Origin: Penicillus capitatus
Lineage: Eukaryota > Plantae > Chlorophyta
Length of the DNA: 64,000 bases
NCBI GenBank assembly: GCA_965649825.1
Contig: OZ287703.1
Coordinates: 987,722-1,051,721 of the forward strand
Reading direction: 5' to 3'
Notes under the pieces: model-generated
Told to the model about the DNA's origin: nothing
Seen by the model: only the letters and a program-made list of their open reading frames with translations
The model's database searches: none
Made by a program: the position numbers and the translations under genes
In this document: positions 1-49,291 of the stretch, one piece after another
Layout of the letters: each line of letters opens with the position of its first letter
Position numbering within the stretch: position 1 is the stretch's first letter

Positions 1-16
1 AGGGATTTGTCTCCAG

Positions 17-2972
<2,956 letters not shown>

Positions 2973-3145
2973 ACGATCTTTCTTTTGCACCAGGCAACCA
3001 GTTTCATTGTTTATTATTCTATTCTAATCTGGACTCGCACTATTTCACAATTGGTGTGTGGTTAGCAGCCGAACTATTTGTTTCCAATGTTGAATGGGAC
3101 ATTGATTCAGTCTTTGCTGCGTTCCATTTGTCTGGAAAAAGGTTC

Positions 3146-8032: not shown

Positions 8033-9311
8033 TTCTGGAACAGTCCAAAAAGTACAAGTTTGATAGGGTGTTCGAATCTGTGGAAAATGAAGTTTCCACC
8101 GAGATCTCAATGCAAATTACCCGTCGAGGACTGCCAAGTGCCCTCATCGAAGGCAATGTTTCGTAGGCGAATCTCTACATACAGTCTCGCACTACATTTC
8201 GAAACCGAGATGCCGAGAACCGTTGTTACAGTATGTGTACACATTATCAAGCTTCTTCGTTTAGTCAACGGCCAGCGCAAATGTGTCTCATCGCAACAAG
8301 CCTTCAAAGTAGTTTTTGCCCAGTTAAAGCAGAGTTGGATTATATTGATGGACGTGTTAGAGAATGTGAGTACCGATCTCATCCAGAAACTTGTGGCATA
8401 TCCGACACCGAATTGTTATAGTCGTTTCACGGATTTAATCCAAATTCTTGAACACCAACTACGATGACGTACTCAATTCTCGAGTTGCCTGTGGCGAGTG
8501 AAAAACTGTTCTGTCTTTAAAAGCATTCACAATTTCTGTTTTACAATGCACAACGCGTGCTGTCAATGAGTCACGTTTTGCTTATCGTTTGCAGAAGAGA
8601 GAGCTCAAAACACTGCAATCTGTAGAGGAACGCCGATGATCACCACAGTCGGCGATGTTACCGTCTATCGTAACCGCCTGTCGGAGGAGGACTCCATGGT
8701 GAAAAGCTCGCAACATTGCAATACTCAATCTTAGAAGTACCTACATAGCCGACGGAGATTCCTATCTGTTTAATCAGGTGGCGACGGCGACAACAGTTTC
8801 TCGTCATATCTGTCTATGATCTGATGTCTATGATCGACTCGCAGTTTTCTCCTGCTTGTCTCTCATCTAAATCAGACATTTTTCGACAGATACCTTATTC
8901 AAGTCGGGTTCTCATGCATCATCTCCTCCCATTGTCTGGATTGACGTCATTTTGAAACCATTGGAGAGAGTTGTTTGCGCAAACAGCTTTCCACGCGCGT
9001 CAAAAGACCTATCATCCAAGAAGAGAGCAGAACCGGCGTAACTGTTGCATGTCCAACGGCCGCTCCTGGGAAACTCGAACATTGCCAAGTGAGAGTTTTC
9101 TCTCTGGCTGAGCGCAAATCGCATAAGCCATTTGACGGCGCAGGGGGTTTACATATCCGGACGCTTTTCAGACAGACGATAACAGCACGTCTTTTTGCGC
9201 TACGTCTTGATAAGAACGACTCTGAACAGTTCGTTCACAACGATAGATCAGATATCCATTCGTCAGGAAATATGGATGTGACGTGTAGAAACCTTTGCCA
9301 CATGCACCAAC

Positions 9312-10290
9312 ATGCGGTTGGTCTGCCAAGCCCTTCGCGTCATCCGTATTCTCCATCGCCCGACGCTGACGAGACTTCAATGCTCCGTGAATGGACGACG
9401 TGTGTCTGAGCGCTCAGTCGCACCTCCTCTCGACGGAAGCATCGAGTCCAGTCCGGACGGAGATCTTACGCTGAAGTTTGATGACGGCACTTCTTCAAAG
9501 ACCCACGCATTCCTGCTTAAGCTCGCCTCTCCTGTCTTCAACACGCTGTTTACTGAATGGAACAAAAACAAACTATGGCATTAGAAGGCACGTCCAAAGA
9601 GACGTGGACGAGGATTCTGAATCGCCTGCATCCCGGCGTTCAATCTCTGTTTCTGGGGTTTGACCCGATGCAAGATACCAAACAACTGGTAAAAGGAGGC
9701 TTATGAATGGATCACGTCTGAGAGCAGAGTGCCCATCTAGGCGGTGTCAGTGGACAGCTGTCCACCTTCGTGCAGCTGTCCAAAGAATCGCTTAAATTCT
9801 TACAATTACTGTTCGAACAGTCTTTGTAATCCTTACGCCTTCGTCGTTAACCCGTTGTCCTTTGACAAACACGACAGCGGATATATTGGAGCAGTCGAGG
9901 AAGTTTGAGCTGCATTCCATGTTCCGGCTGATGGACGTCATCATCTCCGACAGAATCACTGAGAACATGAACGAAGCTCGAAATCTGCCGAGTAGCTTCG
10001 GCAGTAGAGGAGATCGACATTTGATTCTCTATCGCATAGTACTGCAGTTTGAGTCTGAACTTCCGAAGAGCAACGAAATCTTTTATGCACACTTAATCGA
10101 GGTCATCCAGGCCTTTGCTAAACCAGGATCATGGAGCAAGAAGTTTTATTCTCGCAATGATGTCGGTATGGAGCGTTCTCCTCTAATTAAGGCGGCGTTG
10201 ATGGACGTTATTGAAAGCGGCAGTTCCACATTTCACAAAAAAATCTTGGAGGCGTTGATCGAGAAATGTGTTGATACGACTTCATGGTGA
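9312..10290 (+). pseudogene. BTB family pseudogene B3 (paralog of B10)
   Basis: 1-nt deletion near 9560-9575 relative to B10 gives TAG at 9582-9584. A 132-bp insertion sits 4 nt into exon 2. Confidence 0.8.
9745..9876. mobile_element. 132-bp TGTC..GACA insertion with 4-bp TSD
   Basis: GCGG at 9741-9744 and 9877-9880. Empty site CTAG|GCGGATATA at 43463-43475. Contains the perfect 16-bp palindrome GTGGACAGCTGTCCAC (9750-9765). Confidence 0.8.
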
Positions 10291-10464
10291 TCGATAAATG
10301 CAAAAGCCATTGTCTGTGACGTTTACGCATCCAGTTGTATTGTATTGCGGAGACAGGCTGTGCACTTAATGATGCTCTTCTTTATGTTCTTGATGCTCAC
10401 GAACTACTTCATTTCGCTGAATGAAAGCTCCTGTGTGTGAATGCTCGTCATTGCAGAACCAGAC

Positions 10465-10580
10465 TGTCGAACAATAGATGTCACATCAGACTACATGACA
10501 AAAAAGATCGCTTGTACTGCATTCTTCTGAATTTTAAGGGTTTCGCAGTTCAACGTTTAAAACAACGGCTACACCGTGCA
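10465..10580. mobile_element. 116-bp TG..CA insertion with 4-bp TSD
   Basis: AGAC at 10461-10464 and 10581-10584. Empty site CCAGACAAACAAGG at about 44050-44063. Confidence 0.75.
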
Positions 10581-10865
10581 AGACAAACAAGGATTTCTGT
10601 AAGGATTAGCGTTCTATCGATTTCGAGTGTCGATGTCAGAGCTCTGGACGCCAGGCGATTCAGAGCTTCTGCAAATTAGACCACCACATCGAGTACATGG
10701 CAGGACAAAGAGGCGGCAGTCGACCCTTCCACCGACCGTCTGACGACGCATCTGATGAATGAGTGGACCGGGAAGCGGAAGAGGTGCGTTGACTGTGCCG
10801 AAACGACACTTAGTGGGAACGACGTTTCGCTTCACCGCCCAAACTGAGATTGTCCGAGACACGCG

Positions 10866-11595
10866 ATGACATGCAACGGCCTGCCGTCGAACTACTTTCC
10901 CTTCGATGGCAGCTGCGACTGCAGTCGCGATTGGGACTTCGCCCTCGAATTCGAGGACGCGTCGCTGAAGACGCACACCACTCTGCTCAAGCTGGCGTCG
11001 CCGGTCTTCGCCTCGATGCTGACAGACTGCAAACGAGCGAAAGCGCTGTGCCTCGAGGAAACGTCTCAAGAAGCGTGGATCGTCATCCTGAATCACATCC
11101 ATCCATCCGCCCCGTCCTTTTCCTCGCGCTTTAATATCCTCCAGAACATTGAGCTGGTGGTACGGACATTCTTGTCTCGCCGAATGCGAACGAGAATGGA
11201 CTTGTGCACAGGAAGACGTTTTGGAACAGGCAAGGAAGTTCCAGATGGACTTCTTGCTTGTGGCCATTGACGAGGCCATCCTGTCAAAGCTGCCGAAGGA
11301 ATCTCACGTCAACAGCGCTCCCTGTTTCAGTCATCTCCAAGATCGACACATCCCTCTGTACAGCCTTGCGGTTCGATACGAGTCAGAACTGCCTCAGACC
11401 ATCAATGGCATTCTGGCTCATCTCGTCAAGATTCTGCAATTCTGCTCCAATCAAAGCGCGGCTGATCTCAAAAGAAATCGGCAAAATGGCCATCTTCCCA
11501 AGAAACAGGCACTGATGAATGCTATCAAGGACGGGAGTGTCGATTTCTACAAAAGACTAACAGAGAACCTGCTGGAGAAGTTCTTCTTTCTCTGA
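10866..11595 (+). CDS. BTB family protein B4 (exons 10866-11159, 11212-11595)
   Basis: YFPFDGSCDCSRD..LKTHTTLLKLASPVFASMLTDC. Phase-0 52-bp intron; exon 2 begins EDVLEQARKF. Confidence 0.8.
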
Positions 11596-11904
11596 CCATG
11601 CGTTTTCATTGAACATGCCTTGAAAGAAGACAATCTGAACGATTAAAATAACGCGCTTTGTTGCTTAACGCAGGTGCATTCCTTATTATTCAACAGTGTG
11701 AGGCCTAAAACATGTTGACGTCTTTTCACAAAGTCTGCACACGTGGCTATCTATCATCAGAAGAAATGCTCCATCAATTCATCAAACTGATTCCGCTTTA
11801 TCGATTCGTGCGTTGCTGCAGAGCGTATTCACAACGTACGATTTGTGCAGCTGACGCGACGGGCGGACTGTCTTTGCGTCGCTTAGGACTCGCAGCCAGA
11901 CACG

Positions 11905-14900
11905 ATGGCGAAACCGACCGGCTGTTCCAGCCCCTTCTGGAAGGAGTTGCGTCGACAGTTGTGGTCTTTCTACTGCGCCGTGACGTTTTCCCACGTCAAC
12001 AAACTGCTGAACAAGGGAAAGGCGCAGCAGATTGACTGCGACTCTGCTCGCGAATTCCGCCCTGCAAATCTGCATCCTAGATGTCTTGCCGCCGAATTCG
12101 ATGCCATCTACAACCCTCTAAAGGTCGCATTCCTGTCATCTCAATGGTCTGTCTTGGCGTCAACGTTAGCTGTCGACCCTTTGCCAGGCAAAGAGTCAGA
12201 AGCAGGCTTCTAACGACGTCTTGTGGGCACTTCTTCGGCAAGAACGATGGTTGATCTGCCGTATCTGGTTCTGGGTGATTATCGAGTGTACTATCAGGTA
12301 AGAAAATCATATGTCTACTGAAATCGAGGAATGCATGTTCTCTAGGCTGAGCACTCCTTTTCTGCTGAGGGAGTTTCTCATCTGGATCGAGGATTACAAA
12401 GAGGGAGACGCAGAGTTTTCCAGAGGATTATTATGGGGAGGTCTACTGATTGCATCTCCATGTGCTTATATGCCTGCCCACCACCAGAAGTTCTGGTGCG
12501 TTTTCGAGAGAAGGCTTAACATTTCGAAAGAGCGAGGTGCATATGCAGGACTGGCACTCTCTCGGGTTATCGAATGAAAATGACGCTAATGGCTGTACTC
12601 CATTCAAAGCTCCTGAGATTGAACTCTTCGTCCATTGGTCGAATCACGACAGGTTCAACTTTGTGGCAACCTCGGTCTTTTGGATCTGAGAGAAATGTGC
12701 ACAGGACATGTGGTGAATCTCATGAGCAACGATCTGAAGAGATCGGAGTATGCAATAGCAGTGTCTTCCAACTTGATCATCGGTCCATTCGAAACAATCT
12801 TTGTCCTGGTAGCTGTTTCTCTATATCTGGGATTTACTCCGGCCGTTGTTGGAACGAGTTGTTACCTCCTCATCATCCCTGTTCAGGTACGAGGTCCTGA
12901 TTTGACAAGCAGGTGTTGTCAGAGTGCTCTGCAGTCCTTTCTATCGAAGTATATTCGGAAATGCCGTCAGAAGACAGCTGTTGTGACAGATCGAAGAATT
13001 AGTTTGACGGGGGAGTTGATTACTGGAAATTTGGCCATCAAGATGTTGGGATGGGAAGATCCTTTGAGGGAAGGTGTGGAAGACATCAGACAGAAGGAAC
13101 AAAGATGGTTGCTCTACAAAAGCTGCATGAAGGCGCTGCATGCTATGTCGCCCGGTGTCACACGTGCTCTCGTCGTGTGTGCCACGTTCATCACAGTTAG
13201 GCCTTTTTTCTTTGCAGAACTGTTCTCATTCTGTATGTTCTGCATTTGCAGTACAGGCTGACGAACGGCGAGTTCAATGTTCCTGATGTGTTCCTGGCGC
13301 TGAGCTTGCTGATGCTGCCGAAACTGACTATGGCACATCTCTTTGTTCTGGCAGTTGAACTAGCGAATGAGGCCCACGTTGCTGCCAAACGCGTGGATGC
13401 ATTCCTTAAGATTCCAGAACCAGGAAGAACGAACGTAATGGATGGGAGTGTCGTTGGTGAAGTTAAAGTAGAGCAGGGAAACTTCAGTTGGTATGTGCAG
13501 AGAACACAGACAAAGAGAAGTGCGAAGAAAGAAGCCATCCGTGTCTTCTCCGAGGTGAATGCTCGCCGCTTTTGTTTTTGAATCTAAACATGTATTTTTC
13601 TGTCCAGTCAACGAGTGGAAAAGTCAAGAAGGAAACAGTACCAGAGTTGAGACAAGCCTTAGCCGATGTGGACCTCTCTGTTAACCAGGGAGAGCTCGTC
13701 GGCGTGGCGGGAATAGTGGGCAGCGGAAAGAGCTCCCTTCTTGCAGCGCTGCTGAACGACATGGAGAACCTCTCAGACACGCAGAGTGGGACACGCTTCG
13801 CAGAACTGCCACCACAACAGTGTCTTTAGGTGCTCGGCTGCACGGCAGAGTGTCCTACTGCCCACAGACACCATGGATCATGGCTGGGACTGTCCGGGAG
13901 AACATCACGTTCGGTCAGCCATTCGACGAAGGCCTCTATCAGCAAGTGGTCAGCAGCTGCGCGTTGGAAGTCGATTTCGAGCAGTTCCCTGACGGCGATG
14001 CAACGGAACTCGGAGAGAGGGGTATCAACATCTCGGGTGCGAGTCACACACTCCTTCTGAGTTTTCGGCGATTCAGTCTCTCTTCGTTTCCAGGCGGACA
14101 GAAAGCAAGAGTCGCATTGGCGAGGGCGGCCTACAGCCAGGCAGACATCCACCTGCTCGACGATCCCCTCAGTGCTGTCGATCCACGAGTGGCCAGAGTT
14201 CTGTTCGACAGGTGACAGATCTCCTGTCGCTTTCGATCTCCTGCACTCTTCATCTCCTGAATGTGACAGGTGTATCGGACCGGCTGGCCTGATGAAGAGC
14301 TCGACGAGACTGCTTGTGACCCACCAGAGGCAGTTCCTCCCTCTTTGCGATCGCATTGTTCTCATGAACGAGGGCAAAGTCGAAACAGAGGGCACCTGGA
14401 AAGACGTTGAGAGCCATCCCATACTGAAAGTGGTCGAACAGAGCAGAGAACACGAAGAGGTGATCCATCGATATCATAGTCTGCGCGCTTTTCAAAACGG
14501 CGGCATTGCAGGTAAGCTTAGATGCGGTTGGGAAAGCTGCGAAGAGAGCAAAGACAAGCTCAAAGAATGAAGAAGGCGGTCACAGCGAGACAGAAGGAGA
14601 AACTGGTGCACCGAACAACGGCGATTCGAGTTCGACTCCTGGTAGCTTCTCGCGTCATGTCCCTTTCTAATTCGATATGGTTCTGTCAGATGGCAAGGGG
14701 CTTGTAGAAAAGGAAACAAAAGAGATTGGCAAAGTGTCTCTCGGCGTCTACTGGGGATACGTCTGCCACGTGGGCGTTCTACCGATGTTAGGTGCTCTAT
14801 CTGTTTTGGCCGTCGCAGTGGCCTTCTATGTTCTGATCGAGTGGTGGATTGCCCACTGGGCTTCGTCGGACGTAAGCGATCAAGACGATCTGCACTGGAT

Positions 14901-16797
14901 CTGGGTCCTTGTCACATTTACATGCTCGGGCATCAGTTCAAACGTCATCAGTGTCGTCGCCCTCTTCATTCTTCTGCTGTCGGGATCGACTCGATTACAT
15001 ACAAGCATGTTGAAGACGGTTCTGCACTCCCCCCTGAAGTTCTTCCACACCAATCCGACTGGCAGAATCCTCAACAGATTCTCCAAGGACATGGGTATGC
15101 AGGACGAAGATCTGCCGTGGTTTTCCGTGGAAGTTATCACAGTGAGTCAGCTCAATTGCAGTTTTCGTCTCGTCACGTTTTCATTGCTGCAGAATGTTTT
15201 CGTGGCTGTGAGTACAGTGTGTTTGGTATGCATCGCTCTGCCATACATGCTGATTTTCTTCGTTGCCATTTCTTTCATTTTCCGTTATTATTTGCGTCGC
15301 TACGTTGTGACATCGAGAGAAGTCAAAAGATTCGATGGCGTCACACGCTCACCGGTCTATGCCATGTTTTCTGAAAACATAAAAGGACTCTCAACGATAA
15401 GAGCATACAACTGTCAGGAAGATTTTCACAACCGTTTCATGGAGAGTCTGGATCTCAATGGGTCTTGGTTAATGGCTTTCTTGCTGACATCTCGATGGAT
15501 TGGCTATCGATTAGATGGCATCAGTGCGTCAGTCATGCTGTTCTCCGTTACCTCTGCCATCATCCTTGCCAAATCAGTGGGCTCAGTCGCAATAACTAAC
15601 TAGTCGTGCATCATCCGAAATGTTTGCAGGTGTCACCGGAAGTGCTGGGTCTAGCATTGACATACGTAATATCGTTGAGTGGCATGCTTCAGTACACAAT
15701 GCGACAAGCAGCGGAACTGGAGAATACAATGACAGCTGTCGAGAGGAACATGGAGTACACTCAACTCGAACAGGAACCGCCAAGGTAAGCAGCCTCCATC
15801 ATTCATCTCGAGACGTGAAAGCGAATCCGTGACCAGGGCATCAGAGGGAGGCGGACAGGCGCCAGAGGAGTGGCCGACCGTGGGGAGCATCGAGTACCTC
15901 TCCGTGACGGCGTCCTACAGACCTGGACTGGATCCCGTTCTGAAGAACCTCTCGTTCGTCATCCCAGGAGGCAGCTCGGTCGGCATCGTCGGCAGAACCG
16001 GCTCAGGAAAATCCTCCCTGCTGCTGACGCTGTTCAGGTCTCCTGCTTGGACACATCTTTGATCTCTGCATCGAGAAGACTTCTGTGTGCAGGCTGATCG
16101 ACGTAAACGAGGGGGAGATCAGGATCGACGGCGTGGACACGTCCAGCATCGGCATCGACGTTCTGAGGAAGCAGCTGGCAGTGATCCCACAGGACCCGGT
16201 GCTCTTCGGAGGTGATCATCTCTGATGTCTCTGCCGGCCACTGACTCGATGCGACGCAGGAACGCTGAGGTCGAACCTGGATCCGTGGAGCGAGCACAGC
16301 GACGCCAGGGTCTGGGACGTGCTGCAGAAGGTCTGCCTCGGTGCAGTGGTCAGGGACATCGGCGGACTGGAGGCACTCATCTCGGAGAACGGAGGCAACC
16401 TGAGTGTCGGGCAGCGCCAGCTTCTCTGTCTAGCCAGGTGATCTTCCATCTGTCTGCTTTCCGTTTCCTCTCATCACTGTTCTTTGACAGGGTCCTCCTC
16501 TCGGATGCCAAGATCGTTGCGCTGGACGAGGCCACAGCGAATGTGGACAGAGGCACCGACTCCTTGATACAGAACTCTCTGCACTCGCTCATCACTAAGA
16601 ACGACAAGACTCTCCTCATCATCGCCCACCGGATAGACACCGTCATGGACTGCGATCTGCTGCTCGTCTTGGAGGACGGAGAGCTGGTCGAGTTTGACGC
16701 CCCGGGAACTTTGATGGCGAAGGAAGGCGGAGTCTTCGCCGGAATGGTTAAAGCAGCAAAAAAGTCTTCCGGAATTGGGTTAGCCGAAATCAGATGA
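11905..16797 (+). CDS. ABCC/MRP-type ABC transporter, copy B (full length, short form without an obvious TMD0), multi-exon
   Basis: TMD1 ([21 protein letters not shown]), NBD1 ([23 protein letters not shown]), TMD2 and NBD2 ([23 protein letters not shown]) reconstructed across short GT-AG introns. Confidence 0.93.
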
Positions 16798-16960
16798 ATG
16801 ATCTTTCTTTAGCGCCAGGCAACCAGTTTCATTGTTTATTATTCTATTCTATTCTAATCTGGACTCACACTATTTCACAATCGGTGTGTGGTTAGCAGCC
16901 GAACTATTTGTTTCCAATGTCGAATGGGATATCGATTCAGAAAGACTCTTGCTGTATTAC
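13830..16960 (+). repeat. Tandem duplicate of about 17-3136 (offset about 13.8 kb), continuing with indels to about 17170 vs 4140
   Basis: Near-identical exons, several introns and the 3' UTR; visible by direct comparison. Confidence 0.92.
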
Positions 16961-18581: not shown

Positions 18582-19277
18582 TCAGAGAGGAACGACATGG
18601 ATGACCAACGTTACCCAACTCTTGCCGTCATTCACACCACTGTGGTACTCGAATCCATCTTTGTCTCCCGCTCTGCTCTCCCCTCTGATGCGCAACTTCT
18701 CGTCATGCTGATAGCCTTGATACGTATAGTGGCATAGATGGAACCCACAGGACACGATGGAATCTGGGTCCATCAACTCTTTGCAAAGGGGACATGGTGT
18801 GTTGTGCAGCAATGCGCCCATGTTGAAGCCCCGCGATCTTAAAGTCGAACTGGCTCTGTCAAAGGAGCCGGAGAAGCCGAGAGGACTCCATGCCAATTGC
18901 TTATAAGCTTCGCAGTTCGCATTCATGCATCGACCCTCCAGATTGAAGCCCTGTCCAATGACTCTGTAACTTGGCGCGTTCTCTGTGAATCCTCTCTTGT
19001 TTCCATCTTTCATACTGGCGAAGTTGAAACCCAGATCGAAGACAGGGCCGCCTCCCCGCAACCTGAGAACCAGATGAATGCAGCTCTCATCTTCAATGCC
19101 GTAGTCCTTTAGACAGCGACTGTCATCCAGTTGTCGCCCTGCGTAAATTAAGCGCTGCTGATTGTATGGGATCTGCTCTGCTTCTTCTATTTTGTCTTTG
19201 ATATTGTCGACGGTGTCTTCAAGAGAGCAAGAGATAGAAATGGTGTTCTGAGTCAACGTCTTGATGAAGATCTTCAT
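18582..19277 (-). CDS. Ubiquitin-like domain (exactly 76 aa ending LRLRGG) fused to a 155-aa Cys-rich domain; single exon
   Basis: MKIFIKTLT...[11 protein letters not shown]...[17 protein letters not shown], then CMNANC, CPLC and CGFHLC motifs. Confidence 0.92.
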
Positions 19278-20773
19278 CGTTTGTCTCGCGTACTGAGATG
19301 GATAAACGACAGCACTCTCAAACGCCGTTACCCGTTTGTTGCGACGTCGACCGTCACGGGGCAGTTACGCGAACTCGAGCGAATAAGAAAGCTGCTGTGA
19401 CCGCTTCGCCTAAAAACACCAGCGAGCGGCAGTTTAGAGGCTGTTGCTGCATTAAGGCGTTGTTCTTATCGCGACGGGTCGGTCCAGTTCGAAACGACGG
19501 AGAGAAAATGGCAGAGGTCCCGTGGCGGCGCAAAAGTGCGGCAACGATACCTGGAAGTTGTCGCACAGCAGCGACGGACGCGAGTGCTCTGGATGTGGCC
19601 ACGGAAGCGACAAGCCTTGCAAATGCAAAAAGCGGCTTAACGTAAAGGGATGACGAACATTTCCGCTTTCATATGTGCGACGATTCTGCGCGAGGCGAAC
19701 GTCAGTTTCGTCCATGCCGCCGCTGCCGTCTGTCACTTTACGTGTCGTGTGCTATCTCGTCATGCATCTTCGTTCGCGTGACAAACTGGCCAGCGTAACC
19801 CGGCAACGTGTGACCAGCCTTTCACTTCCACATGGAAGAAGCATAGACTGATGGTATGAGCACCTCTGCAATGTTACGTCCGACTTGTGAAAACAAGTGA
19901 CGGACTCGATCCGTTTCTCCAGTGGCTTGATTTGACGATTGTGCCGCTTCGCCGGCAGCTGCATGTTAACCTCCAGGTGCATCCAAACAGCAGTTAACAA
20001 TGACATCATCATGGCGAGAAAAGAGTGATCCATCATGCCAATCAGGAGGAGTCTCCTGCGAAACAAGAACGGTTGATGAGTGTTGGAACGATGTCCAACA
20101 TCGATGGAGACGAGATTTTACCGCTCCATTCACCACGCCGCCATCTACAGTGTCCCAAACTTTGGATGGTACGTGTGGCATGGATGTGCGGAGAGCGATG
20201 CCGCTGCGCTTTCGTATTGCGTGGCTTGAGACGGTCAGGTCCACCGTCCTGTCGCTGTCTTTCAGTGTCGAGCCAGTTCGAAAGCGACGGCTTTCATTGC
20301 AGAGCTGCATGGGCAGGGCATGCACAGCATCTGGCGCCTTCCAAAAGACATCCCTTCCGTTTGCATCAATGCCTTGTGGCACAGAAGAGAATCCAACCTC
20401 CAGGCGGTCTCTCTGAGATCCTTCTCACAGAGCGGGACACATCCGTCTCTTTACTTTCTTTGAACCCGTCCTCATTGGAAAGCCATCCATCCACGTCACC
20501 CTTAAATAAACGGTCGCTTTTAGGTCAGGAGAAACCGCGCGTCTCTTATCCAAAAGTGGACAGCTTGTTGCTGAGTACTGTCGATCCCGTACTCTGCAAA
20601 AGTGACATCCACCAGATCGTCACAACACGTTGCATCTCCGACGTCGTTGGCAGAAGCAGTGAAAGCGACGCGGCATGGATTGCCTTACAAATGCTGACGT
20701 GTATCCGACCGTGTCCAGCAGTATTCTTCAAAAACGGCCCTTGGCACCCGTCTTCGCGCGTTTGCGTCTCGAG

Positions 20774-21553
20774 ATGTCGGACAACACGTCACCTTCCTCC
20801 GAGAGTTCTTCCCCGTCGAGCTATTTCCCATTTGACGGCAGCTGCGACTGCAGCCGCGACGGGGACCTTACGCTCAACTTCGCTGACGGATCTTTTCTGA
20901 AGACTCACGCCGCGCTACTGAAGATGGCGTCGCCCACTTTCAAAGCGATGCTCACGGACTGCGCAGAGACTGGAACGGTGGCTTTGGAAAACACATCAAG
21001 AGAGGCATGGGTTCTCATCTTGAACTGCCTTCATCCAGGCACTCGACATCTCTTCTCGAACTTCGATCCAATCGCGCAGACAGACTTATTGGTACGAACC
21101 TTGTAAACGGGTCGACTTGTACAGCGATTGTCTTCACAGGCTGATGTACTGGAACAATGTCGAAAGTTCACGTTCGTCCACGTGCTCGAAGGACTCGACT
21201 ACATGATCGCCGCGGAGATTCCTATAAATATGAGGAACGACTATCTAAAATGTCCGACTGGTTTCGGTGATCCCGATGCTCAACACTTGCGTCTGTACAC
21301 TCTTGCACTTGAGCGTGCGAAGGTATTGCCTAGAACCGTTGACAGTATAAGTGAACATATTGGACGAGTTTTGAGTTTTGTCGCCGGATATGGACATAAG
21401 ACCTCCGGCTCGAAGGTTACAAACACTCCTCCTCCGTTTGGTATGATGCCGCGTAGGAGTATTCTAATGAACCTTTATACAAAAGGAAATAGTCGTTTTC
21501 GAGACAAACTCGTCAGACAGATGATGGAGAACAGTAATTACATGAGGGACTGA
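20774..21553 (+). CDS. BTB family protein B5 (exons 20774-21091, 21140-21553)
   Basis: Family motifs; phase-0 48-bp intron; exon 2 begins ADVLEQCRKF. Confidence 0.82.
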
Positions 21554-30663: not shown

Positions 30664-33600
30664 TCACGGACGTAAGAGTTTCTTGAGGACCCTTCGCGTC
30701 GACTTGGAACATGAAAGAGCACTTGCAACACAAACAAGGTCAAAAGGCGTTTCTCCACTGTCGTTTGTTATGGTCTTCGAGGCCCCGGCATCCACCAGAA
30801 CCTGAAAATGCACTATTACACTATAAGATGCTGTTTCTGACGTGCCTTGGCTGTCTCTAACGCGCCGTTCGTCGATGCATCGTGAAGTGGAGTATCTCCA
30901 AACGCATCCGTTGCGTCGAGATAGGCATCTTTTTTGAGTAACAACTGTAGAAGGCAAAGTGAAAGAGAAGACGAGAGGGAATAGGCAAAAGCACCTTTGT
31001 AACCTTTGGGCTCGTTCTGGTTACGGCAATGTGAAGCGGTGTCTGTCCGATACTGCTCGCGCCGTCAACGTCGGCTCCGTGTTTGAGGATAATCTGCCAG
31101 TCGACAGTTTACGCCAATGCGGCAAGGACGTATATGTGCAACAAACCTCGACAACTTCGGCGTCCGAATAACGTGTTGCAAACAGCAGAGGCGTCCATCC
31201 AATGATATTGGCATGGTTGACTTTAGCTCCGTGCTTAAGGAGGATCTGGCGATCGAAACGTTCTGCCGAAAGGCAACGAAGCGGATGCGATACTCACCTC
31301 GATCATTTCGGCGTCTGCTTTACGCGCTGCAAAAAGCAGAGGCGTCCATCCTTCGTCTATGGCCTCGTTGACTTTAGCTCCGTGCTTGAGGAGAATCTGG
31401 CAAACGACAGACAGCTTCTGCCAATGAGGCAACGACGATGTTTGGTGCGCGACCCGACCTTGACCATTTCGGCTCCTGCGTAACGCGCTGCAAAATTCAG
31501 CGGCGTCCATCCATCGTTTATAGCTTGGTTGACTTTAGCTCCGTGCTTGAGGAGAATCTGACAGTGAACAGACGACTTCTGCCAATGAGGAAACGACGGT
31601 AAGTGTACAACAGACCTCGACAACTTCGGCGTCCGAGTAACGTGCTGCAGAAACCAGAGGAGTCCATCCATTGTCCTTGGCCTGGTTGACTTTAGCTCCG
31701 TGCTCGAGGAGAGTCTGACAGTCGACAGTTCTGTCATCGAGGCGACGAAGTGAATGCGTTACTCGCCTCGACCACTTCGGCATTCGAATGACGCGTTGCC
31801 AAAAGCAGAGGCGTCCATCCATCGTCTATGGGCTGATTGACTTTAGCTCCGTGCTCGAGGAGGATCTGGCAAACAAGAGACAGTTTCTCTCATCAAGGCA
31901 ACGACGTTTAATGCGTAACCGACCTCGACCACTTCGGTTTCTGCGTAACGTGCGGCAATATGCAAAGCAGTCCATCCATCGTCTATGGGCTGATTGACTT
32001 TGACTTCGTGCTCGAGGAGGATCTGGAAAACGCCAGACGGCTTTTGTCATCGAAGCAATGGCGTTTAATGCGTAACCGACCTCGACCACTTCGGTTTCTG
32101 CGTACCGTGCTGCAATATGTAGAGCCGTCCATTCATCGCCGTTAACTGATTTGACGTCTGCTCCGTACTCGAGAAGGATCTGGCAAAAGATAGACAGTTT
32201 CTACCTATAAGGCAACCAAATGAACGCGTTACGCACCTCCACCATTTCGGCGCCTGCATAACGTGCCGCAGAATGCAGAGGAGCCCATCCGATGTCGTTC
32301 TTTTGGTTGACATCCGCTCCGTGTTCGAGGAGGATCTAAGAACCAACGCTTGAGCACACGATCAAAATCGCTTTGTAGATTCACCTTCGCCACCTTCGCA
32401 TGTCCTTTCCCCGCTGCCAGGTGCAAAGGAGTCCATCCATCTTCGTTGACTGCATCGACGAATGCCTCATATTCCAGAAGAACCTTCAAGGCGTGAACAG
32501 AGAAATTTGATGGACAGAGACGAAGCATCTAGACTCTGTCATCCAGAGTGGATTCAGCCCAGAATAATACCTCAGTGCATTCTGACGTGTTGTAAAGCGC
32601 CGACCAGTGCAACAGAGCGAACCGTTCCGATTTCCAGTACCATGGCATTCGAACGAAGGACTTGTAGACGGAATCTGGATCCAGTGCCTGCAGAAGAGCT
32701 GCTTCTAGCTTCGGGGCATCGTCATCTTTTATACAGTGATATGCTTCCTACAGAACCGTAGCGCAGTCCAGAATGATCTTTATTGTCAATTCAACCTTAT
32801 TCAGCTCTTTCTGAGATAGCTCCGTCAGCTGTTTGCGTTCCTCTTCGATTCCCTGCCGTTCGGACTTCTCGTTTTGCGGTTTATCATCCACAGGCTCATC
32901 CGCTGCTGAAAATCCCACGCCATCTTCGTCATCGTGCGAAGGTTCGTTCATAACTTCCGACGAATCTGGCACCTGCACTAAGAGATCAGGACAATAGAAG
33001 GAGATTGATCGAATGGTTCACCTCTTCTTCGTCGATTATTTCGAGAATCCAATCTCTGAACGCGTCTATTCTTGTGTAGACAGAAGGCGATGCATCATCG
33101 CAGTCTTTGGATCTCACGGACGTCACACCGATGAGCAGGTCGCGTTCTGGACTCCCCTCCGATACGTCTCCCTCCGATCTGTCAGGAATCAACAACAGAC
33201 CGCCGGAATCTCCTACGACAAGGGTAAATCAGCAGAAAGCGTCATCTCATGCCATTCAGAACCTTCGCATGCGGTTTCTCGCGAAAATCCGGCACAAATC
33301 GAGTGACGGTTGACGGAGTGTCCCAGAAGCTTCTTGCAGACATGATGCTTCACATGTACCAGGCCATTCGTCATCTGCAAAGAACTTGGATGCTTTCCGT
33401 TGTTGCTCAGTCCCCAACCGAGTGCGGCGAAGAGTTTGCCATTACGGAATTCGCCTCGCTGAGTGTCCATCGACGGCAGCGAGCGATTCGCTTCCTTGTT
33501 TAATTTGACGACGGCGATATCGTATCCGTCGTTCACGTCGCCCGTCCAAGATTCAGGCCAATAGCTTTTCTCTCCCTTCAGTACCTAGCAACACGCATTT

Positions 33601-35030: not shown

Positions 35031-35065
35031 ATCAGTCGCCAACCTTCCGTCTTAAACAACTAAAC

Positions 35066-35180
35066 GTTCGGTGGACGAGAGCCTTGTCTTCGTATAGCGG
35101 AGACCGTACGTGCCGTTAACGGCGTGCGCCCAAAAGCACAAAGAAACGAAAACGACACTTGTGCAAAACTTCATCATCAT
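35066..35180 (-). pseudogene. Orphan copy of the patatin signal-peptide exon
   Basis: MMMKFCTSVVFVSLCFWAHAVN matches MATKFCTVVVFVSLCLSAHAVN at 49291-49176. The splice donor is deleted and patatin exon 2 is absent. Confidence 0.75.
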
Positions 35181-35891
35181 ACTGCTCGCTGAAACGACAG
35201 CGACGACAGGTGGATGCAAGACGTATAGGCGACGGTGCCAGTACGCGCTGCGTCCGGCGTCTTCTGTTCTGTGAATCGTTCAGCATGACGATGTCTGCCT
35301 TCATGGAAGATTCCTCATTTGGAACCAGAAACCAGCTAACCGCGAAATAAACCTTCTTCCTGGGGTCGGTTGAGACGTACCTGTGGCGTTTGCCGCTGTC
35401 TATACCCGTCTAAGGACCTGGAGAATACAGGTATACCTGATGAGGCAAAGCTCCGACGTTGTATCGCGCTTAAACGATGCCCAGTCGCAAGAGGGAAGTG
35501 CAGACCATGCATGCATGGATGTATGATCCTCAGACACAGCCATGACAGGTTTGTCTACCGAAGACTGAAGCATCACGTTTCGTGTGATATGTATGTGTGA
35601 GAAATGGACTGGTGGGTCATCATTGTAGATGGACGTATCATGAAGTCATTCCTGAACATCTGACAAGACATCCCGGCCGTGTTGATCACGATCAGATGTC
35701 GCTGCCCTACGATGTGATTGATGCGTTGTCATCTTATTCCGCACCGCGTCGCAACAGTTTAGGTAGCTGACGTTTGTCGCCAGAAGAAATAAAAACGAGT
35801 ACAAAAACGAAAACGATTTCACGTTCCTTTGATTTTTGACCTACCCGTAGTACTCTGCCGAACGATTTTTTCGGTTTGCTCGAGTGGCGCC

Positions 35892-36684
35892 ATGGCAGAC
35901 AACAGCTTTACTTTGGCTTCTTTTCCCTTCGATGGCACCTGCAAGTACAGTCGCAACGGCGACACGATACTCAAGTTCAGTGACGGCTCTTACTTAAAAA
36001 CGCACGCCGCTCTACTGAAGATGGCATCTCCTGTCTTCGATTCGATGCTGACTGACTGTACAAACACGAAGACACTTGTGTTGGAGAAGACCTCTCGTAA
36101 AACATGGGTTCACATCCTGAACCATCTCCATCCAGCAGGATCACTCGTTTTTTCCAACTTTGATCGCGTCAATGGATTCGCCACGGATCTGCAAGAGGAT
36201 CACACATACGAGATAAAAGCGAAGTGCGACGCTTTGTCCGATATCCTCGAACAGGCAAGAAAGTTCAAGCTGGATTCTCTGTTTGCTTTCATGGACGATC
36301 TGTTGTTTTCTCTTTTCCCCAAAGAACTGGATTCCAACCTTGCACAGAGGCTTGCTAATAACAACCGCTCTCACGGCCGTCTCTATAACCTTGCACTCCG
36401 ATTTGAGTCAGAATTGCCTAAGACCAGTGAGAAAGTCCGTGGTAACATTATTAAGTACCTGCAGAATACCAGCCAATGCCGCAGCTGTGGAGCAAGACGC
36501 TTCCAAAGTTCATCATATCGTCAAAGAGTAAGAATAATAATCTACTCTTCTCGTTTTAGGATGTTTTGTTTAGAATCAGTCCAGTGAGGCCGAGAAGAAT
36601 TTTGCAGTGAACCTCATCGATGAAGGAAGTCAGGAATTCCACAAGAAGCTGATCAAGGATCTCATAAGCTCTATTCTGTTTTGA
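35892..36684 (+). CDS. BTB family protein B7 (exons 35892-36527, 36574-36684)
   Basis: Family motifs. No intron at the canonical position; a 46-bp phase-0 intron near the 3' end restores the C-terminal LIDEGSQEFHKKLIKDL motif. Confidence 0.78.
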
Positions 36685-42153: not shown

Positions 42154-43032
42154 ATTGAAATTTTTGTGTCAACCACGATGACGCAATCGATTCTCGGGTT
42201 GCATATTGTGAATGGAGATTATTTCGGCTGTTAAAAGCATTCGCAAGATCTGTTCCGCTTCGCACAACGCGTGACTTTAACAATGACATGTTTTTCTAAT
42301 CGTCGCAGAGAAGAGAGAAAAGTTAGAGCTCTGCAATCTGTAGAGGAGCACTACTGGCGATATCCCCAGTCAGCGATGTGACCGTCTATCGTAGCCGTAT
42401 ATGGACGCAATAGTCCATCATGAAAACACATACGTCACGACCGTCGACACCAGACCTCCCATGCAGCTGACCGAGATTCCTGTCTGTTTTATCAGACAGC
42501 GACGGCGACAACACTTTCTCGGCATATCTGTCTATCCTCTGGTCATAATCGGTTTGCGGTTTTCGCCTGTTTGCCTCATGACTGTGTCAGACAATCTTTC
42601 TACAGATTCCTTTTTCAAGTCGGGTTCTCATGCATCATCTTCTCTCATTGTCTTGATTGACGTAATTTTGAAACCATTGGAGAGAACTGTTTGCGCAATC
42701 AGCTTTCCACGCGCGTCAAAAGACCTATCACCCAAGAAGAGAGCAGAATTGGCGCGACTGTCGCATGTCCAACGGCCGCTCCTGGGAAACACAAACATTG
42801 TCACGTGAGAGTTTTCTCTCCAGTGAGCGCAAATCGCATAAGCCATTTGACGGCGCACAGGTTTACATTTACGTATCCGGACGCTTTTCTGACAGACGAT
42901 AACAGCACGTCTTTTTTGCGCCACGTCCTGGTAAGCACGACTCTGAACAGTTCGTTAACAACGACAGATCAGATATCCATTCGTCAGGAAACGTGGATGT
43001 GACGTGCACAAACCTCTGCCTCACGTTTCAAC

Positions 43033-43880
43033 ATGATGTCGGTTCGCATTCCCTTTCGCGTCGTCCGCATATGCCGTCGCCCGACGGCGACGAGATTTCG
43101 ACGCTCCGCGAATGGACGACGTGTGTCTGTGCGTTCGGCGATACCTCCTCTGGACGGAAACATTGAGTCCAGCCCGGACGGAGACCTTACGCTCACGTTC
43201 GACGACGGCTCCACTCTGAGAACGCACTCCTTTTTACTCAAGCTCGCCTCTCCAGTCTTTAACACGTTGTTTAGTGAATGCGAAAAGATCGAAGCTCTGG
43301 CATTAGAAGGCACGTCCAAAGAGACGTGGACGAGGATTCTGAATCGCCTGCATCCCGCCGTCCAATCTCTGTTTCTGGACTTCGACCCGATGCGCGATAC
43401 CAAACAACTGGTACGACGGAGGAGGCTTATGAATGGATCATGTCTGAGAGCAGTGTGCCCATCTAGGCGGATATATTGGAGCAGTCAAGGAAGTTCGAGC
43501 TGCATTCCATGTTCCGGCTGATGGACGTCATTATCTCCGACAGAATCACTGAGGAGATGAACGAAGCTCAGAATCTGCCGAACGGCTTTCGAAAGAAAGG
43601 AGATCGACATTTGGTTCTGTACAGCATAGCTCTCCAGTTCGAGTCTGAATTGCCGAAAAGCAATGATATCATCCATACACACTTGGTCGAAGTCATCCAA
43701 GCATTTGCCAAACCAGGAGCGTGGAGCGAGAAGTTCTATAAACGCAACGATGTCGGTATGGAGCGTTCTCCTCTAATTAAGGCGGCGTTGATGGACGTCA
43801 TCGATAGTGGCAGTGCATCGTTACACAAAAAGCTCTTGGAGGCGCTGATCGAGAAATGTGTTGATACGACTTCATGGTGA
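43033..43880 (+). CDS. BTB family protein B10 (exons 43033-43410, 43467-43880) with an Arg-rich N-terminal extension
   Basis: DGDLTLTFDDGSTLRTHSFLLKLASPVF; 56-bp phase-0 intron; exon 2 begins ADILEQSRKF. Confidence 0.8.
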
Positions 43881-44336
43881 TCGATAAATGCAAAAGCCAT
43901 CGTCTGTGACGTTTACGCATCCAGTTGTATTGTATTGCGGAGACAGGCTGTGCGCTTAATGATGCTCTTCTTTATACTTTTGATGCTCACGAACTACTTC
44001 ATTTCGCTGAATGAAATCTCCTGTGTGTGAAATGCTCGTCATTACAGTACCAGACAAACAAGGATTCCTGTAAGGCTTAGCGTTCTATCGATTTCGAGTG
44101 TCGATGTCAGGGCTCTGGACGCCAGGCGATTCGGAACTTCTGCAAATTAGACCGCCACATCGAGTGCATGGCAGGAAAAAGAGGCGACAGTCGACCCTTC
44201 CGCCGACCGTCTGACGACGCATCTGAATAATGAATGAACCGGGAAGCGGAAGAGGTGCGTTGACTGTGCCGAAACGACACTTAGTGGGAACGACGTTTCA
44301 CTTCACCGCCCAAACTGAGATTGTCCGAGACACGCG

Positions 44337-45066
44337 ATGACATGCAACGGCCTGCCGTCGAACTACTTTCCCTTCGATGGCAGCTGCGACTGCAGTCGTG
44401 ACTGGGACTTCGCCCTCGAATTCGAGGACGCGTCGCTGAAGACGCACACCACTCTGCTCAAGCTGGCGTCGCCGGTCTTCGCCTCGATGCTGACAGACTG
44501 CAAACGAGCGAAAGCGCTGTGCCTCGAGGAAACGTCTCAAGAAGCGTGGATCGTCATCCTGAATCACATCCATCCATCCGCCCCGTCCTTTTCCTCGCGC
44601 TTTAATATCCTCCAGAACATTGAGCTGGTGGTACGGACATTCTTGTCTCGCCGAATGCGAACGAGAATGGACTTGTGCACAGGAAGACGTTTTGGAACAG
44701 GCAAGGAAGTTCCAGATGGACTTCTTGCTTGTGGCCATTGACGAGGCCATCCTGTCAAAGCTGCCGAAGGAATCTCACGTCAACAGCGCTCCCTGTTTCA
44801 GTCATCTCCAAGATCGACACATCCCTCTGTACAGCCTTGCGGTTCGATACGAGTCAGAACTGCCTCAGGCCATCAATGGCATTCTGGCTCATCTCGTCAA
44901 GATTCTGCAATTCTGCTCCAATCAAAGCGCGGCTGATCTCAAAAGAAATCGGCAAAATGGCCATCTTCCCAAGAAACAGGCACTGATGAATGCTATCAAG
45001 GACGGGAGTGTCGATTTCTTCAAGAGACTAACAGAGAACCTGCTGGAGAAGTTCTTCTTTCTCTGA
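44337..45066 (+). CDS. BTB family protein B11 (near-identical to B4)
   Basis: Same exon structure as B4; only two amino-acid differences seen (T/A and Y/F in exon 2). Confidence 0.8.
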
Positions 45067-45817
45067 CCATGCGTTTTCATTGAACATGCCTTGAAAGAAG
45101 ACAATCTGAACGATTAAAATAACGTGCACGTTCTTCGATCTCTCTGAGCTTTTATTCTAACAGTAGACTGAATCCTGGTCATATACGTCTCTTCTTCACT
45201 GCCCTGTCTGCATTTCGCACAGAATGAAGGATGAGAAGAGATTCATTAGACAAACAAACGCTCGCCGGTGAACGGTTAAGTGGCGGCCGGGACATTTGAC
45301 ACGCGATCTGGACAACCTGATGGAATGGTAGCAACGAATGAGTGAGCATGGCTTCGAGCAAGCCATCAACCGGAGATCCCTTGCATGCAAGAAGAGCGCT
45401 GAATGTCCTGCGCCATGCCACTAGAGCGACAACGAACCCACCTTTTGGCTGTCAAAGGCCATAGTCGATGGAGGAATTCGATGAACGCATGGATCCATCC
45501 ATCTCTTGGTTACCGGGGACCAGTGAAGCTGTTTCTGAGTCTCGTGGCTTTATCTGGCTTGTCCTTCTCGTCCACGTCCTTGGACCGCACCCCTGTCGGT
45601 AACCGTTCGACCAAACAGTGCCGGTCGAAGAGTGAATCTAACGTCACTTGCTCGTTCTTCCATGCTTTTAAACTCTGACGTGACGTTGTCACTCTGCAAA
45701 ACAAATCGCACGGCAATGTTGTTCTGACATATCATCCAAACGCCCCTATACCTTCTCAACTCTCCTCCTTACGTCACTCTCTTTTGTTCCATGTCCGTCT
45801 CGACCTTCTAACCGAAG

Positions 45818-47441
45818 ATGGCGGCGAATGAAAAGCTGGCGGATCTCTTGTCGCAAAAACAGTTCTTGTGGAAGGTCCTCGTCCACCTCATCGACAGCGG
45901 ACTCCATGAATGCCGTCGCGTTTGCCGCAAATGGTACGAAGTATGCGACAAGCTCCCAGCGAAACTCAGCCTCAGTACATGCGTCGATCGCTGCGTCGAG
46001 TCGGACGTGTTTCCAAATGCCGTTTCACTCAAATTCGATGCTGGCGTCTTTTTGACCCATGACTCTGTGGAAAACCATCTTCTGCCATGCCTGTCTAAAC
46101 TGAATCGTATCGCGCGCCACGAGTTCTGCACAAAGGAATGGCCACTTGTCCACTTTCGGCCGAATTGTCTGACGTCCTTCAACGCTGTGCGATCTCTCTC
46201 GGTCACTGGACGGGACGAGTCTGCTTTTTTCGATTTTCTGGAGACGCTGAGATGTCTAACGGGCTTGACGGAACTGGAATTGCGCACGGAGGCAATATAC
46301 ATCAATGCCACGGATTTGGCTCCAATTACAGAGATCGAAGAACTCAGAACTCTCAAAGCAAGCTCATGTTTCATTGTCGATCGAAACGACGACTTCATCT
46401 TCGGCACCCAACAACAATTGACAAAACTCGAGGTTCGGCACGAATTCTTTTCTGCTTCCCAAAGCACAACACTGCAAGTAATGCCTGTGCACCCCCTTTC
46501 CATTTTTGGACTGTATTTTTTTCTAGTCGCTCTATCCGCACGCTTCAAATCTGCGCTCTCTGGCACTTAATGAAGCATTGAACGGAGGATTGAGCATCGA
46601 AGACTATGACACGCTGAGACACCTCTCACAGTTGGAGCATCTTTTGCTGGAAAGCATTTTTGTGGAAACAAAAGGCTTTGTCAGTGTCTTGGAAAATTTG
46701 AGTAGACTGACCGCATTGGAGATCATTCATACGGTCGTTTCGGAGCTTCCACTCGTACTGGATTGCATTTTCGCGATGTCAAAGCTGAGGACGCTTACAC
46801 TCAAACCACGTCGCCTGCACCTTGATCACATCTGCGCACCGACCCACACGAGCCGGATGCAGCTGACAAAGCTATCTTGGCAGTTTGATGCCTCCTTACT
46901 CAAGCTGATGGACCTAACCAGAATAGCGCACTTCGACATTGAGCTTGGAAAACAGACCTGTCATGAGGACCTCGTTCGCGCATTGGATTCGATGCCGGAT
47001 CTTCAGTTTCTCTGCATCTACAGCGAGGCGAAAGGACAGCTCGTGCCAAGCCATGTCTTAGCGCGGATGACAAAACTGAAGGTGCTGGAAGTCGGAGGAG
47101 TGTACACGGACGAGGCCATCTACCAAACCTTAGCCACGTTGCCAGAATTGACCGATCTCAGTTTAGACTTTCATTCTCGAAAGTTCTTGATCCCGACCTT
47201 CATGTATCTCCATACCCAGATCAATCTGCTCACGAATCTGAGGTCTCTGAGGTTTATGAAGGCTTACCCTATAAAACCTTACGCTCTGTTGGAGAGTCTT
47301 TCGGGAGAGCACCTGAAAAGACTCCAAACACTCTATGTATCCTCTGCAAACTTGAACGATGATCGTCGTGCAGTCCTATTCAGAAGGTTTCAATCGCTCC
47401 GCTGTTTGTCCGACGGCCGTGCGAGCGGTTTTGTCCTATAA
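45818..47441 (+). CDS. F-box-like + leucine-rich-repeat protein (exons 45818-46477, 46527-47441)
   Basis: N-terminal FLWKVLVHL..ECRRVCRKWYEV resembles an F-box. Repeated LxxLxxLxL motifs (LTGLTELEL, LSQLEHLLL, LSRLTALEI, LTNLRSLRF). 49-bp phase-0 intron. Confidence 0.72.
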
Positions 47442-47853: not shown

Positions 47854-49291
47854 CTAACCGAAAATGAATCGTTGGACATAAGAATCAATCGATTTACGAT
47901 ATTCCTGTGCAACCTTCTTGGCAATTTCTTCGACAACAGTTACGAACGTCGCATCATGAAATCTCGTGAACGCCCTGCCCTCTTCTGATGTGATCGGGGC
48001 AATCTTTTGCACTCTGAGATACTGATTCGGTTGGACGTTGGGATTCGAATAGTAGATATAATCTGTTAAAGCTGACATTCCATCGATTCCACTATCTAGG
48101 GTCAGCCCCAGCCATGCGTTCTCGTCAAGCCAACGGACTGCCCCTTCATTCGCCAGCCCAAGGCGACTAAACGAGGCACGTCCATTACCGATCGAGAGCA
48201 AAGCACTGCTTCCGATACCTGGAGCTCCAGTCTCGGCCGCGACAAAATTACTCGCCAGCAATTCCGTCGTTGCTAGTGGATTAACTCCATCGATCATGAT
48301 GAACTCGCCAATGTCATTGCCGACTCGGGATACAATCTTTGCCGCATTGAGTGCAGGTACTGAGCTCGTGACCACGCCAATGTCTTTGAGATAGTAATTC
48401 TTGCCTTCCTCGAATGTAAAATCCGGTGCGAAGCGTCCATTACTGGCAGGAAGCGGTCTCGGCCCGGAACGCACCATCAATCGAGCGGCAAACGTCACTG
48501 ACGGCTCTCTGAACTTATTCTGAATGAAATAGACTCCCTCTGATGCGATCAGGTCATAGGCAGGAAGGATAACAGAGGTGTCGCAGTCCTCCAACGTTGT
48601 ATTTCCATAGAAAGCCTCGAGGGTGCGTTCCAATCCGTCTGACAGATACAGAGGCGTCAGGACACCTAGTGCGCTGGGATTTGTGACATCCAGTGGCGTC
48701 TCTGCTTTGAGATTGATGGATTCCGTCGGATAGATGGTGCTGCCGAATTCGATAAAGAGGATGCGAAGGGCCTCAGCGCCGCCGGCGACTATCACCCCGT
48801 ACTTAGCCACAATGTCGGGTTCTTCGAGGACAGCACGTACAGCACCCTGACCGCCACGCGAGGCGAGATACAGAGTCGTCCAGCCACCGGCCGAGATACT
48901 GGTCATACAGTCGAAATAGTCAGCGAGGTTGATATCGAAAGCATTGATGTTGTGGATGTGAGTGACAGGGAGCAGTAGGTGTGGGTGCTGAACGAGATAT
49001 TTTTTTATGGACTGTTCGACTTCGATGAGAATCGTCACCGAGAAAATGGTACAGAGAGCGCCTCCGCCCACGGAGAGAATCGTTTTAAAAGTACGGCCAG
49101 GCGGTCTGCCGATGAGCGGCCTGCGACGGAAAACCCAAAGTCACTCAACCTTCTGTCTTAGACCGTTAAACGCACTTTCCGGTGGATGAGAGCCTTATCT
49201 GCATATGATAACGACCGTTCGCGTCATTAACGGCATGCGCCGAAAGGCACAAAGAAACAAAAACAACAACCGTGCAGAACTTCGTTGCCAT
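47854..49291 (-). CDS. Secreted patatin-like protein with degenerate catalytic motifs (exons 49291-49176, 49120-47854)
   Basis: Signal peptide exon spliced via a 55-bp phase-2 intron. ILSVGGGALC, LADYFDCMTSISAG, GLERTLEAFYGNTTL, MIDGV and LLSIGNG align with patatin blocks. Confidence 0.85.

Follow-up and report, generated by a model that had tools for sequence, protein, structure and literature searches.

The window, by which we mean the whole stretch of 64,000 nucleotides analysed here, contains a gene in which a ubiquitin-like (Ubl) domain is followed directly by a tail domain. The reading that we prefer, with a rough probability of 55%, is that this gene encodes a cleavable Ubl-fusion precursor with a new cargo domain, comparable to FUBI-eS30 or Ub-eL40. 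The textbook cases of ubiquitin (Ub) fusion genes have two or three ribosomal partners. The gene in the window points to a further partner domain, which is common and also occurs in giant viruses of amoebae, for which no related structure has been solved, and whose one constant is its position directly behind a Ub-like GG. Precursors with a Ub-like fusion are a known kind of protein; the partner domain here appears to be unnamed, structurally new and common. In the literature we found no prior description of the tail as a Ub fusion partner, although such an absence is not proof.

The gene and its ubiquitin-like domain

The gene is an uninterrupted, ATG-started open reading frame of 231 codons, identified from the list of open reading frames and their translations, with its stop codon at 18582-18584. 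The features referred to below are the following:

18582..19277, minus strand: coding sequence for the Ub-like domain, the GG junction and the tail domain; 231 aa plus stop, intronless, complete
19050..19277, minus strand: ubiquitin-like beta-grasp domain, residues 1-76, with the C-terminal end LVLRLRGG (Pfam PF00240, 6e-26)
19050..19055, minus strand: G75-G76 (G77-P78 come next), predicted to be the site of processing; both Gly invariant in 6/6 close homologs
18585..19049, minus strand: tail domain, residues 77-231, all-beta, probably zinc-binding, absent from Pfam (profile search and AF2)
18912..18929, minus strand: first Cys knuckle, C117-x4-C122 (CMNANC); both Cys invariant in the 82- and 67-member sets
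18783..18794, minus strand: second Cys knuckle, C162-P-L-C165 (CPLC); C162, P163 and C165 invariant or nearly so
18732..18749, minus strand: C177-G-F-H-L-C182 hairpin (CGFxxC); C182 nearly invariant, C177 replaceable
20675..21106, plus strand: BTB-domain open reading frame, head-to-head with the Ubl-tail gene, context only (Pfam BTB 1.9e-5)
12635-15603, plus strand: ABC transporter (ABC_membrane) in several open reading frames that are presumably its exons; found also downstream of the ortholog in locus L003

The N-terminal domain matched Pfam PF00240 over the whole model (model positions 1-72) with 90.4 bits against a cut-off of 25.4 (E 6e-26). The original prediction had described a gapless alignment of the first 76 residues to ubiquitin, and this was borne out with ubiquitin chains from the PDB (E about 1e-24). 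In the AF2 model residues 1-70 have a pLDDT of 76-95 and the beta-beta-alpha-beta-beta order of a beta-grasp fold, with strands at 2-6, 12-16, 41-45 and 66-71 and a helix at 23-34. Canonical ubiquitin is a near-invariant protein of 76 aa with all seven lysines; the domain in the window is identical to it at 44/76 positions (58%) and has four of the lysines replaced. Its identity to NEDD8 is 38/76, and the domain is about as distant from ubiquitin as NEDD8 is. It has three Cys and ubiquitin has none.

The residue list given in the original prediction was correct throughout. L8, I44, V70, R42, R72, R74 and G75-G76 are kept, as are H68 and L73; the replacements are K11N, K33A, K48R and K63D, and K6, K27 and K29 are still Lys. 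Judged by the alignment, the residues relevant to E1 (L8, I44, V70, R42, R72 and the GG) are present in the domain.

The tail domain

The tail of the window protein has 155 aa, including six Cys. In the 82- and 67-member sets of the family, G110, C117, C122, C162 and C165 are invariant, P163 is invariant among the 67 sequences and almost so among the 82, and P102, R105, G115, C182, G188, W221 and L224 are nearly invariant. The first knuckle closes the motif AP-x-[WY]-R-x-[VI]-x-x-G-[LF]-N-L-x-G-x-C-x-N-x-x-C. C182 of the hairpin is retained in at least 90% of the members, C177 in a majority only. No conserved His, Asp or Glu was found among the members of either set, and the Cys pattern without such residues points to a structural four-Cys zinc site formed by C-x4-C and C-P-x-C.

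The tail had no match in Pfam, NCBIfam, PHROGs or PADLOC, and no Pfam family covered it in any of the 82 members that were scanned. Searches of PDB sequences with the single sequence and with the profile gave only sub-threshold matches to half-RING and zinc-ribbon motifs, such as a zinc-ribbon-like match of the second knuckle to eL43/L37Ae (E 0.04). An identity as a RING or U-box E3 was rejected: zf-RING_UBOX, at E 0.11, lay below the threshold, TRIM RINGs reached E 0.27-0.9 over half a motif, six Cys stand against the eight ligands of a cross-brace, and the all-beta AF2 fold has no RING match in the PDB.

A full-length AF2 model made with six sequences gave a pLDDT below 50 in the tail, which was then modelled from an alignment of 67 sequences. 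This second model has a pLDDT of 92 and a pTM of 0.86, with nine strands and one short helix. No neighbour was found by Foldseek in the PDB (best E 0.15, TM <0.3), and cupins and Siah were dismissed as noise (E >0.1, TM <0.3). The predicted fold of the tail is confident in the model and, by this comparison, novel.

Two giant-virus proteins were the only structural neighbours of the tail when the PDB and the viral predicted structures of BFVD were searched. They are the Pandoravirus salinus 'Ubiquitin' S4W648 (E 2e-12, TM 0.78) and the Barrevirus 'Ring and ubiquitin domain protein' A0A3G4ZQ93 (E 6e-11, TM 0.75, rmsd 1.9), the TM values being normalised to the query and the identity being 18-20%. 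Viral membership in the tail family is read from BFVD structures only. Based on these structural matches the modelled fold is shared by protists and giant viruses of amoebae, and it accompanies ubiquitin in both.

Close relatives and selection

A search with the tail alone led to six full-length relatives of 229-256 aa, every one with a Ub domain and the tail. They originate from contigs of 0.06-6.9 Mb in two ENA long-read metagenome assemblies (ERZ25074695 and ERZ26696514). The window gene has an intact allele, P0001 (locus L002), with a single E-to-K change; the flanks of the two are 97.9% identical (2.1% differences) over 16.7 kb, and the coding sequences have about two differences (about 0.3%). 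P0002 (locus L003, from the other sample) is the syntenic ortholog: the ABC transporter follows downstream, and upstream lies a BTB gene in head-to-head orientation. The paralogs P0003 and P0012 lie 42 kb apart on one other contig (ctg340412_28x; L009 8001-9173, L004 8001-8690), and P0005 and P0006 form a third pair, which is syntenic. Three contigs with family members had read depths of 28x, 38x and 344x in one sample, and depths in the other were 148-173x; from the unequal depths, two related eukaryotes may coexist in the first sample.

We calculated dN/dS by the Nei-Gojobori method for the Ub and tail halves separately, and obtained 0.2-0.4 in both halves for every pair. The Ubl-tail gene is real and intact, and these ratios place it under purifying selection. 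Between the window gene and its ortholog P0002 the ratio was 0.38 in the Ub half (dN 0.24, dS 0.64) and 0.31 in the tail, at a dS of about 0.64. The Ub halves of the two differ in 34% of their residues and by a one-residue insertion beside G47, and this half evolves much faster than true ubiquitin does.

In the tails of the six close homologs the mean column identity is 75% and 58 positions are invariant; conservation is lower in the Ub part. The invariant positions there are, in ubiquitin numbering, M1, D21, K27, K29, R42, L50, L56, D58, I61, L69, G75 and G76. The window protein, P0002 and P0003 have LRLRGG at the end of the Ub domain. In P0004-P0006 the corresponding motifs are IIMRGG, FRGVGG and YRAIGG, with L71, L73 and R74 lost and the GG retained.

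Family survey and the GG junction

The tail profile was searched with HMMER against 1.84 billion representative proteins (clusters at 50% identity). At least 936 proteins matched at E<=1e-3, 126 at <=1e-10 and 9 at <=1e-30, with the tail domain almost always at the C terminus. In a Pfam scan of 82 members PF00240 was found upstream of the tail in 47, and a few members had RING, caspase or Hint domains. Cellular members are often rich in N/K/I or contain poly-Asn tracts, a composition that suggests AT-rich protists.

Of 120 members whose sequence extends upstream of the tail, 84 have the GG in the stretch examined around the junction, and so do 59 of the 68 in which a Ub domain was detected. 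Most members have 0±2 residues between the Ub C terminus and the start of the tail. When 56 near-complete adjoining Ub domains, 26-80% identical to ubiquitin, were compared, the sole invariant positions were G75 (53/53) and G76 (52/52). A set of 147 members with Ub and tail was assembled from this first profile search and a second one; 137 of them have the GG, and LRLRGG is found in 69/137. The residue that follows the GG in these 137 is Gly in 101 (74%), Ala in 10 and Ser in 6, and Pro in none. From G76 to the first conserved Phe of the tail there are 4-8 residues in the family and 8 aa in the window protein. In P0012, which has three Ubl repeats, only the repeat that adjoins the tail carries a GG, and the first two end in LLPSELET. 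By these comparisons the unit under selection is Ub(l)-GG-tail and not the lysine pattern.

Other architectures were also found. P0053 has several Ub units ahead of the tail, P0087 and P0125 have the layout X-Ub-tail-RING, and in P0023 a caspase domain is flanked by truncated tails. P0075 has the layout Ub (80% identical)-RGG|Cys...Hint...HisAsn|tail, in which an intein-like or BUBL-like insert sits exactly at the junction of Ub and tail, with the tail in the position of a C-extein.

Genomic neighbourhood

The window contains 14-15 BTB-like open reading frames between 4999 and 63902, all on the plus strand and belonging to a tandemly expanded family; six of them were compared with Pfam BTB, and each scored just above the cut-off. 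The nearest (20675-21106) lies about 1.4 kb from the Ubl-tail gene in head-to-head orientation, and the same arrangement is found in the ortholog locus L003. The original prediction had placed the gene among cullin adaptors. As a description of the surroundings this holds, whereas the identity of the BTB proteins as cullin adaptors is something that we infer. A functional link between the Ubl-tail gene and the BTB array was rejected since the array, although syntenic in the ortholog, is absent from three of the four paralog loci (L001, L005 and L006).

Duplicated segments of 81-98% identity were detected inside the window (8-3110 and 13821-16940; 8456-11653 and 42170-45124; 35034-36178 and 49139-50289), which indicates that the region was recently rearranged. 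They include part of the ABC transporter region and several BTB genes. A tandem array at 31074-32290 on the minus strand has a period of 157 bp, each unit consisting of a 99-nt ankyrin-repeat exon (ILLEHGAKVN...DGWTPL...) and an intron of about 58 nt with the donor GTNNGT (once GCGAGT) and the acceptor CAG. Introns of this length in the array indicate that the window comes from a short-intron eukaryote. The single-strand BTB array had raised the possibility of a dinoflagellate source, which was discarded in view of the short and mostly canonical introns. Pfam matches below the cut-off were a patatin-like domain at 61865-62899 (plus strand, E 1e-4), LRR at 46578-47441 (plus strand, 1.4e-8) and an ion-transport domain at 55807-56883 (plus strand, 5e-3). 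The Rfam and tRNA scans found nothing within the window.

A proposed cleavable precursor and its alternatives

As in carboxyl-extension proteins, the Ub(l) ends in GG and abuts its partner without a linker domain, which favours a cleavable precursor. The N-terminal Ub-like domain would be made first and fold fast, helping the tail as a chaperone in cis or by promoting its expression, and a protease of the deubiquitinase type would then cut after G76. Fusions of the type Ub-X are cut rapidly in cells when X is other than Pro, as is known from the ubiquitin-fusion technique. By analogy general DUBs are likely to cut the window protein, in which the patch of L8, I44, H68 and V70, the LRLRGG and the Gly that follows make such a cut plausible; the sequence supports the original prediction in that the features for cleavage after LRLRGG are kept. 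The cut would yield the tail domain as a product of 17 kDa and, separately, a fast-evolving Ubl that is free and has its GG exposed. As the better conserved of the two, the tail is presumably the main functional product. It is most likely a protein-interaction module in ubiquitin signalling, since in other members it adjoins RING fingers or tandem Ubls. N-myristoylation of the N-terminal Gly of the released tail was considered and rejected: the residue after it is often Pro or Phe, either of which is unfavourable for the N-myristoyltransferase motif.

The evidence for cleavage is entirely comparative, with the invariance of the GG and the lack of Pro after it (0/137) pointing to it indirectly; that the protein is cut, that the tail binds zinc and what either product does are our reading of the sequences. 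Some observations speak against a precursor. The Gly after the GG in 74% of the members (GGG or GGGG) is more than a DUB site needs, and the run of Gly could have been selected as the flexible hinge of an uncleaved protein. Generic Ub-specific DUBs may be inactive on P0004-P0006, in which LRLR is no longer intact. Members with a RING behind the tail, or with domains ahead of the Ub, look like integral multi-domain proteins.

These observations lead to the strongest alternative, which we regard as possible rather than probable: an integral Ubl protein of the Rad23 or Parkin type that stays uncleaved, in which the Ubl would dock the tail to the proteasome or to Ub receptors, or dock to the tail, and the Gly would form a hinge. 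The Gly after the GG is often followed by further Gly, as in a linker, and the GG itself persists where the LRLR is gone. An integral Ubl also agrees with the X-Ub-tail-RING members, with the 'RING and ubiquitin domain' proteins in which giant viruses have this tail fold, and with the similar dN/dS of the two halves, which evolve as one unit. Integral UBL domains, however, normally lose the GG. The window protein has LRLRGG, the GG is invariant in its homologs, and in Ub domains down to 26% identity it is the sole invariant feature. A hinge would also have no need for the full LRLRGG that half of the members carry, Pro never follows the GG, and the repeats of P0012 that lie away from the tail have no GG. 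These points argue against an uncleaved Ubl. If the protein is cleaved, it would represent a new class of carboxyl-extension proteins, and many free Ubls that evolve fast would arise in this way; an uncleaved protein would be an unusual integral Ubl that has retained its GG.

We consider it unlikely that Ub(l)-GG-tail is an unrecognised, widespread module of protists and giant viruses in which the tail, as a new zinc-containing beta fold, would be functionally coupled to the C-terminal end of the Ubl that precedes it, serving as a dedicated receptor, acceptor or processing partner and not as passive cargo. If true, this would amount to a self-contained Ubl system of a new kind beside E1-E2-E3 and BUBL.

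The original prediction had drawn attention to the lysines and proposed that the Ubl, once released and charged by the ubiquitin E1, may be a natural chain terminator by its K11N, K33A, K48R and K63D replacements, or an atypical-linkage modifier through K6, K27 and K29. The window protein does have L8, I44, H68, V70, R42, R72, L73, R74 and the GG, K27 and K29 are invariant in the six closest homologs, and K63 is missing from all eight closest relatives, in four of which K48 is Arg. The two features that were expected to be conserved fared differently among the homologs. The GG is conserved (6/6 close homologs, G75 53/53, G76 52/52, 137/147 in the larger set), but the lysine loss is not: the ortholog P0002 retains K11 and K33, the paralogs P0004, P0005, P0006 and P0012 retain K48, and in the 56 Ub domains of the family K48 is kept in 31/56, K63 in 17/56 and K11 in 24/55, with 0 to 7 canonical lysines retained. 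Nor is the surface around I44 well kept in the family (L8 40/56, I44 28/56, V70 22/56). With 58% identity to ubiquitin, a dN/dS of 0.38 and the insertion beside G47 in the ortholog, the domain diverges quickly, unlike a modifier that has to be recognised by E1, E2s, E3s, DUBs and receptors, and capping of chains does not explain the obligate fusion to a conserved tail. The variable lysine pattern and the fast divergence of the Ub domain thus leave a dedicated chain terminator unsupported. The idea would be compatible with cleavage, but the conservation that it predicts is missing, and we hold it to be improbable.

The least probable reading, which we take to be very doubtful, is that the tail acts in cis on the Ubl C terminus as an acceptor, receptor or processing module, independently of E1 and loosely like BUBL; the strict coupling to a GG 4-8 residues upstream across hundreds of proteins, the BUBL-like layout of P0075 with the tail as C-extein, and the near invariance of C182 despite its being dispensable for a four-Cys site speak for it, but a catalytic Cys would have no conserved His, Asp or Glu as partner, the invariant Gly, Pro and four Cys fit a structural zinc site, the fold comparison brought up no proteases, Hint domains or E2s, and the support comes mainly from the tight coupling and from one Hint-containing member.

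Comparison with known systems

In protists many non-ribosomal Ub fusions exist and are often missed by annotation (PMC6332867). Ub-actin, Ub-NiSOD, Ub-P1 and Ub-'hypothetical' resemble the window gene in having a single N-terminal Ub in frame with an unrelated partner (PMC6332867), but their partners are lineage-restricted or of known function, whereas here one unnamed domain recurs in at least 936 clusters. The viral proteins S4W648 and A0A3G4ZQ93 have both the tail fold and ubiquitin domains; they differ in being larger (626 and 434 aa), in having extra RING or other regions, and in being uncharacterised.

BIL domains need no ATP to join the Ubl that precedes them to downstream partners (PMC8616854, section 2.4). 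The ciliate BUBL proteins (Ubl-BIL/Hint) are similar in that a Ubl-GG is followed directly by a downstream domain, and P0075 has a Hint domain between Ub and tail. In contrast, the window protein has no Hint match, and the residue after its GG is Gly and not Cys or Ser.

The ribosomal fusions are closer. In Ub-eL40 the Ub is cleaved off fast and acts as a cis chaperone, and in Ub-eS31 it is likewise cut off quickly as a cis chaperone (PMC11499249). Both share with the window protein an N-terminal Ub that ends in LRLRGG and is followed at once by a partner with a Cys4 zinc-binding site, which in the tail is a predicted one. In these two fusions the Ub is canonical and supplies the Ub pool, whereas the domain described here is 58% identical with four lysines replaced, and the tail, having no Pfam or NCBIfam match, is not identified as eL40, eS31 or eS30. 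FUBI-eS30 is a divergent Ubl-GG fusion that is processed by USP36 (PMC8354635, PMC10611586). Its cargo is eS30, whereas ours is a 155-aa domain, beta by prediction and probably zinc-binding, whose ribosomal likeness is a zinc-ribbon motif at E 0.04; with a divergent and fast-evolving Ubl that has retained its GG and carries a small cargo immediately behind it, FUBI-eS30 is the best functional analogue of the gene in the window.
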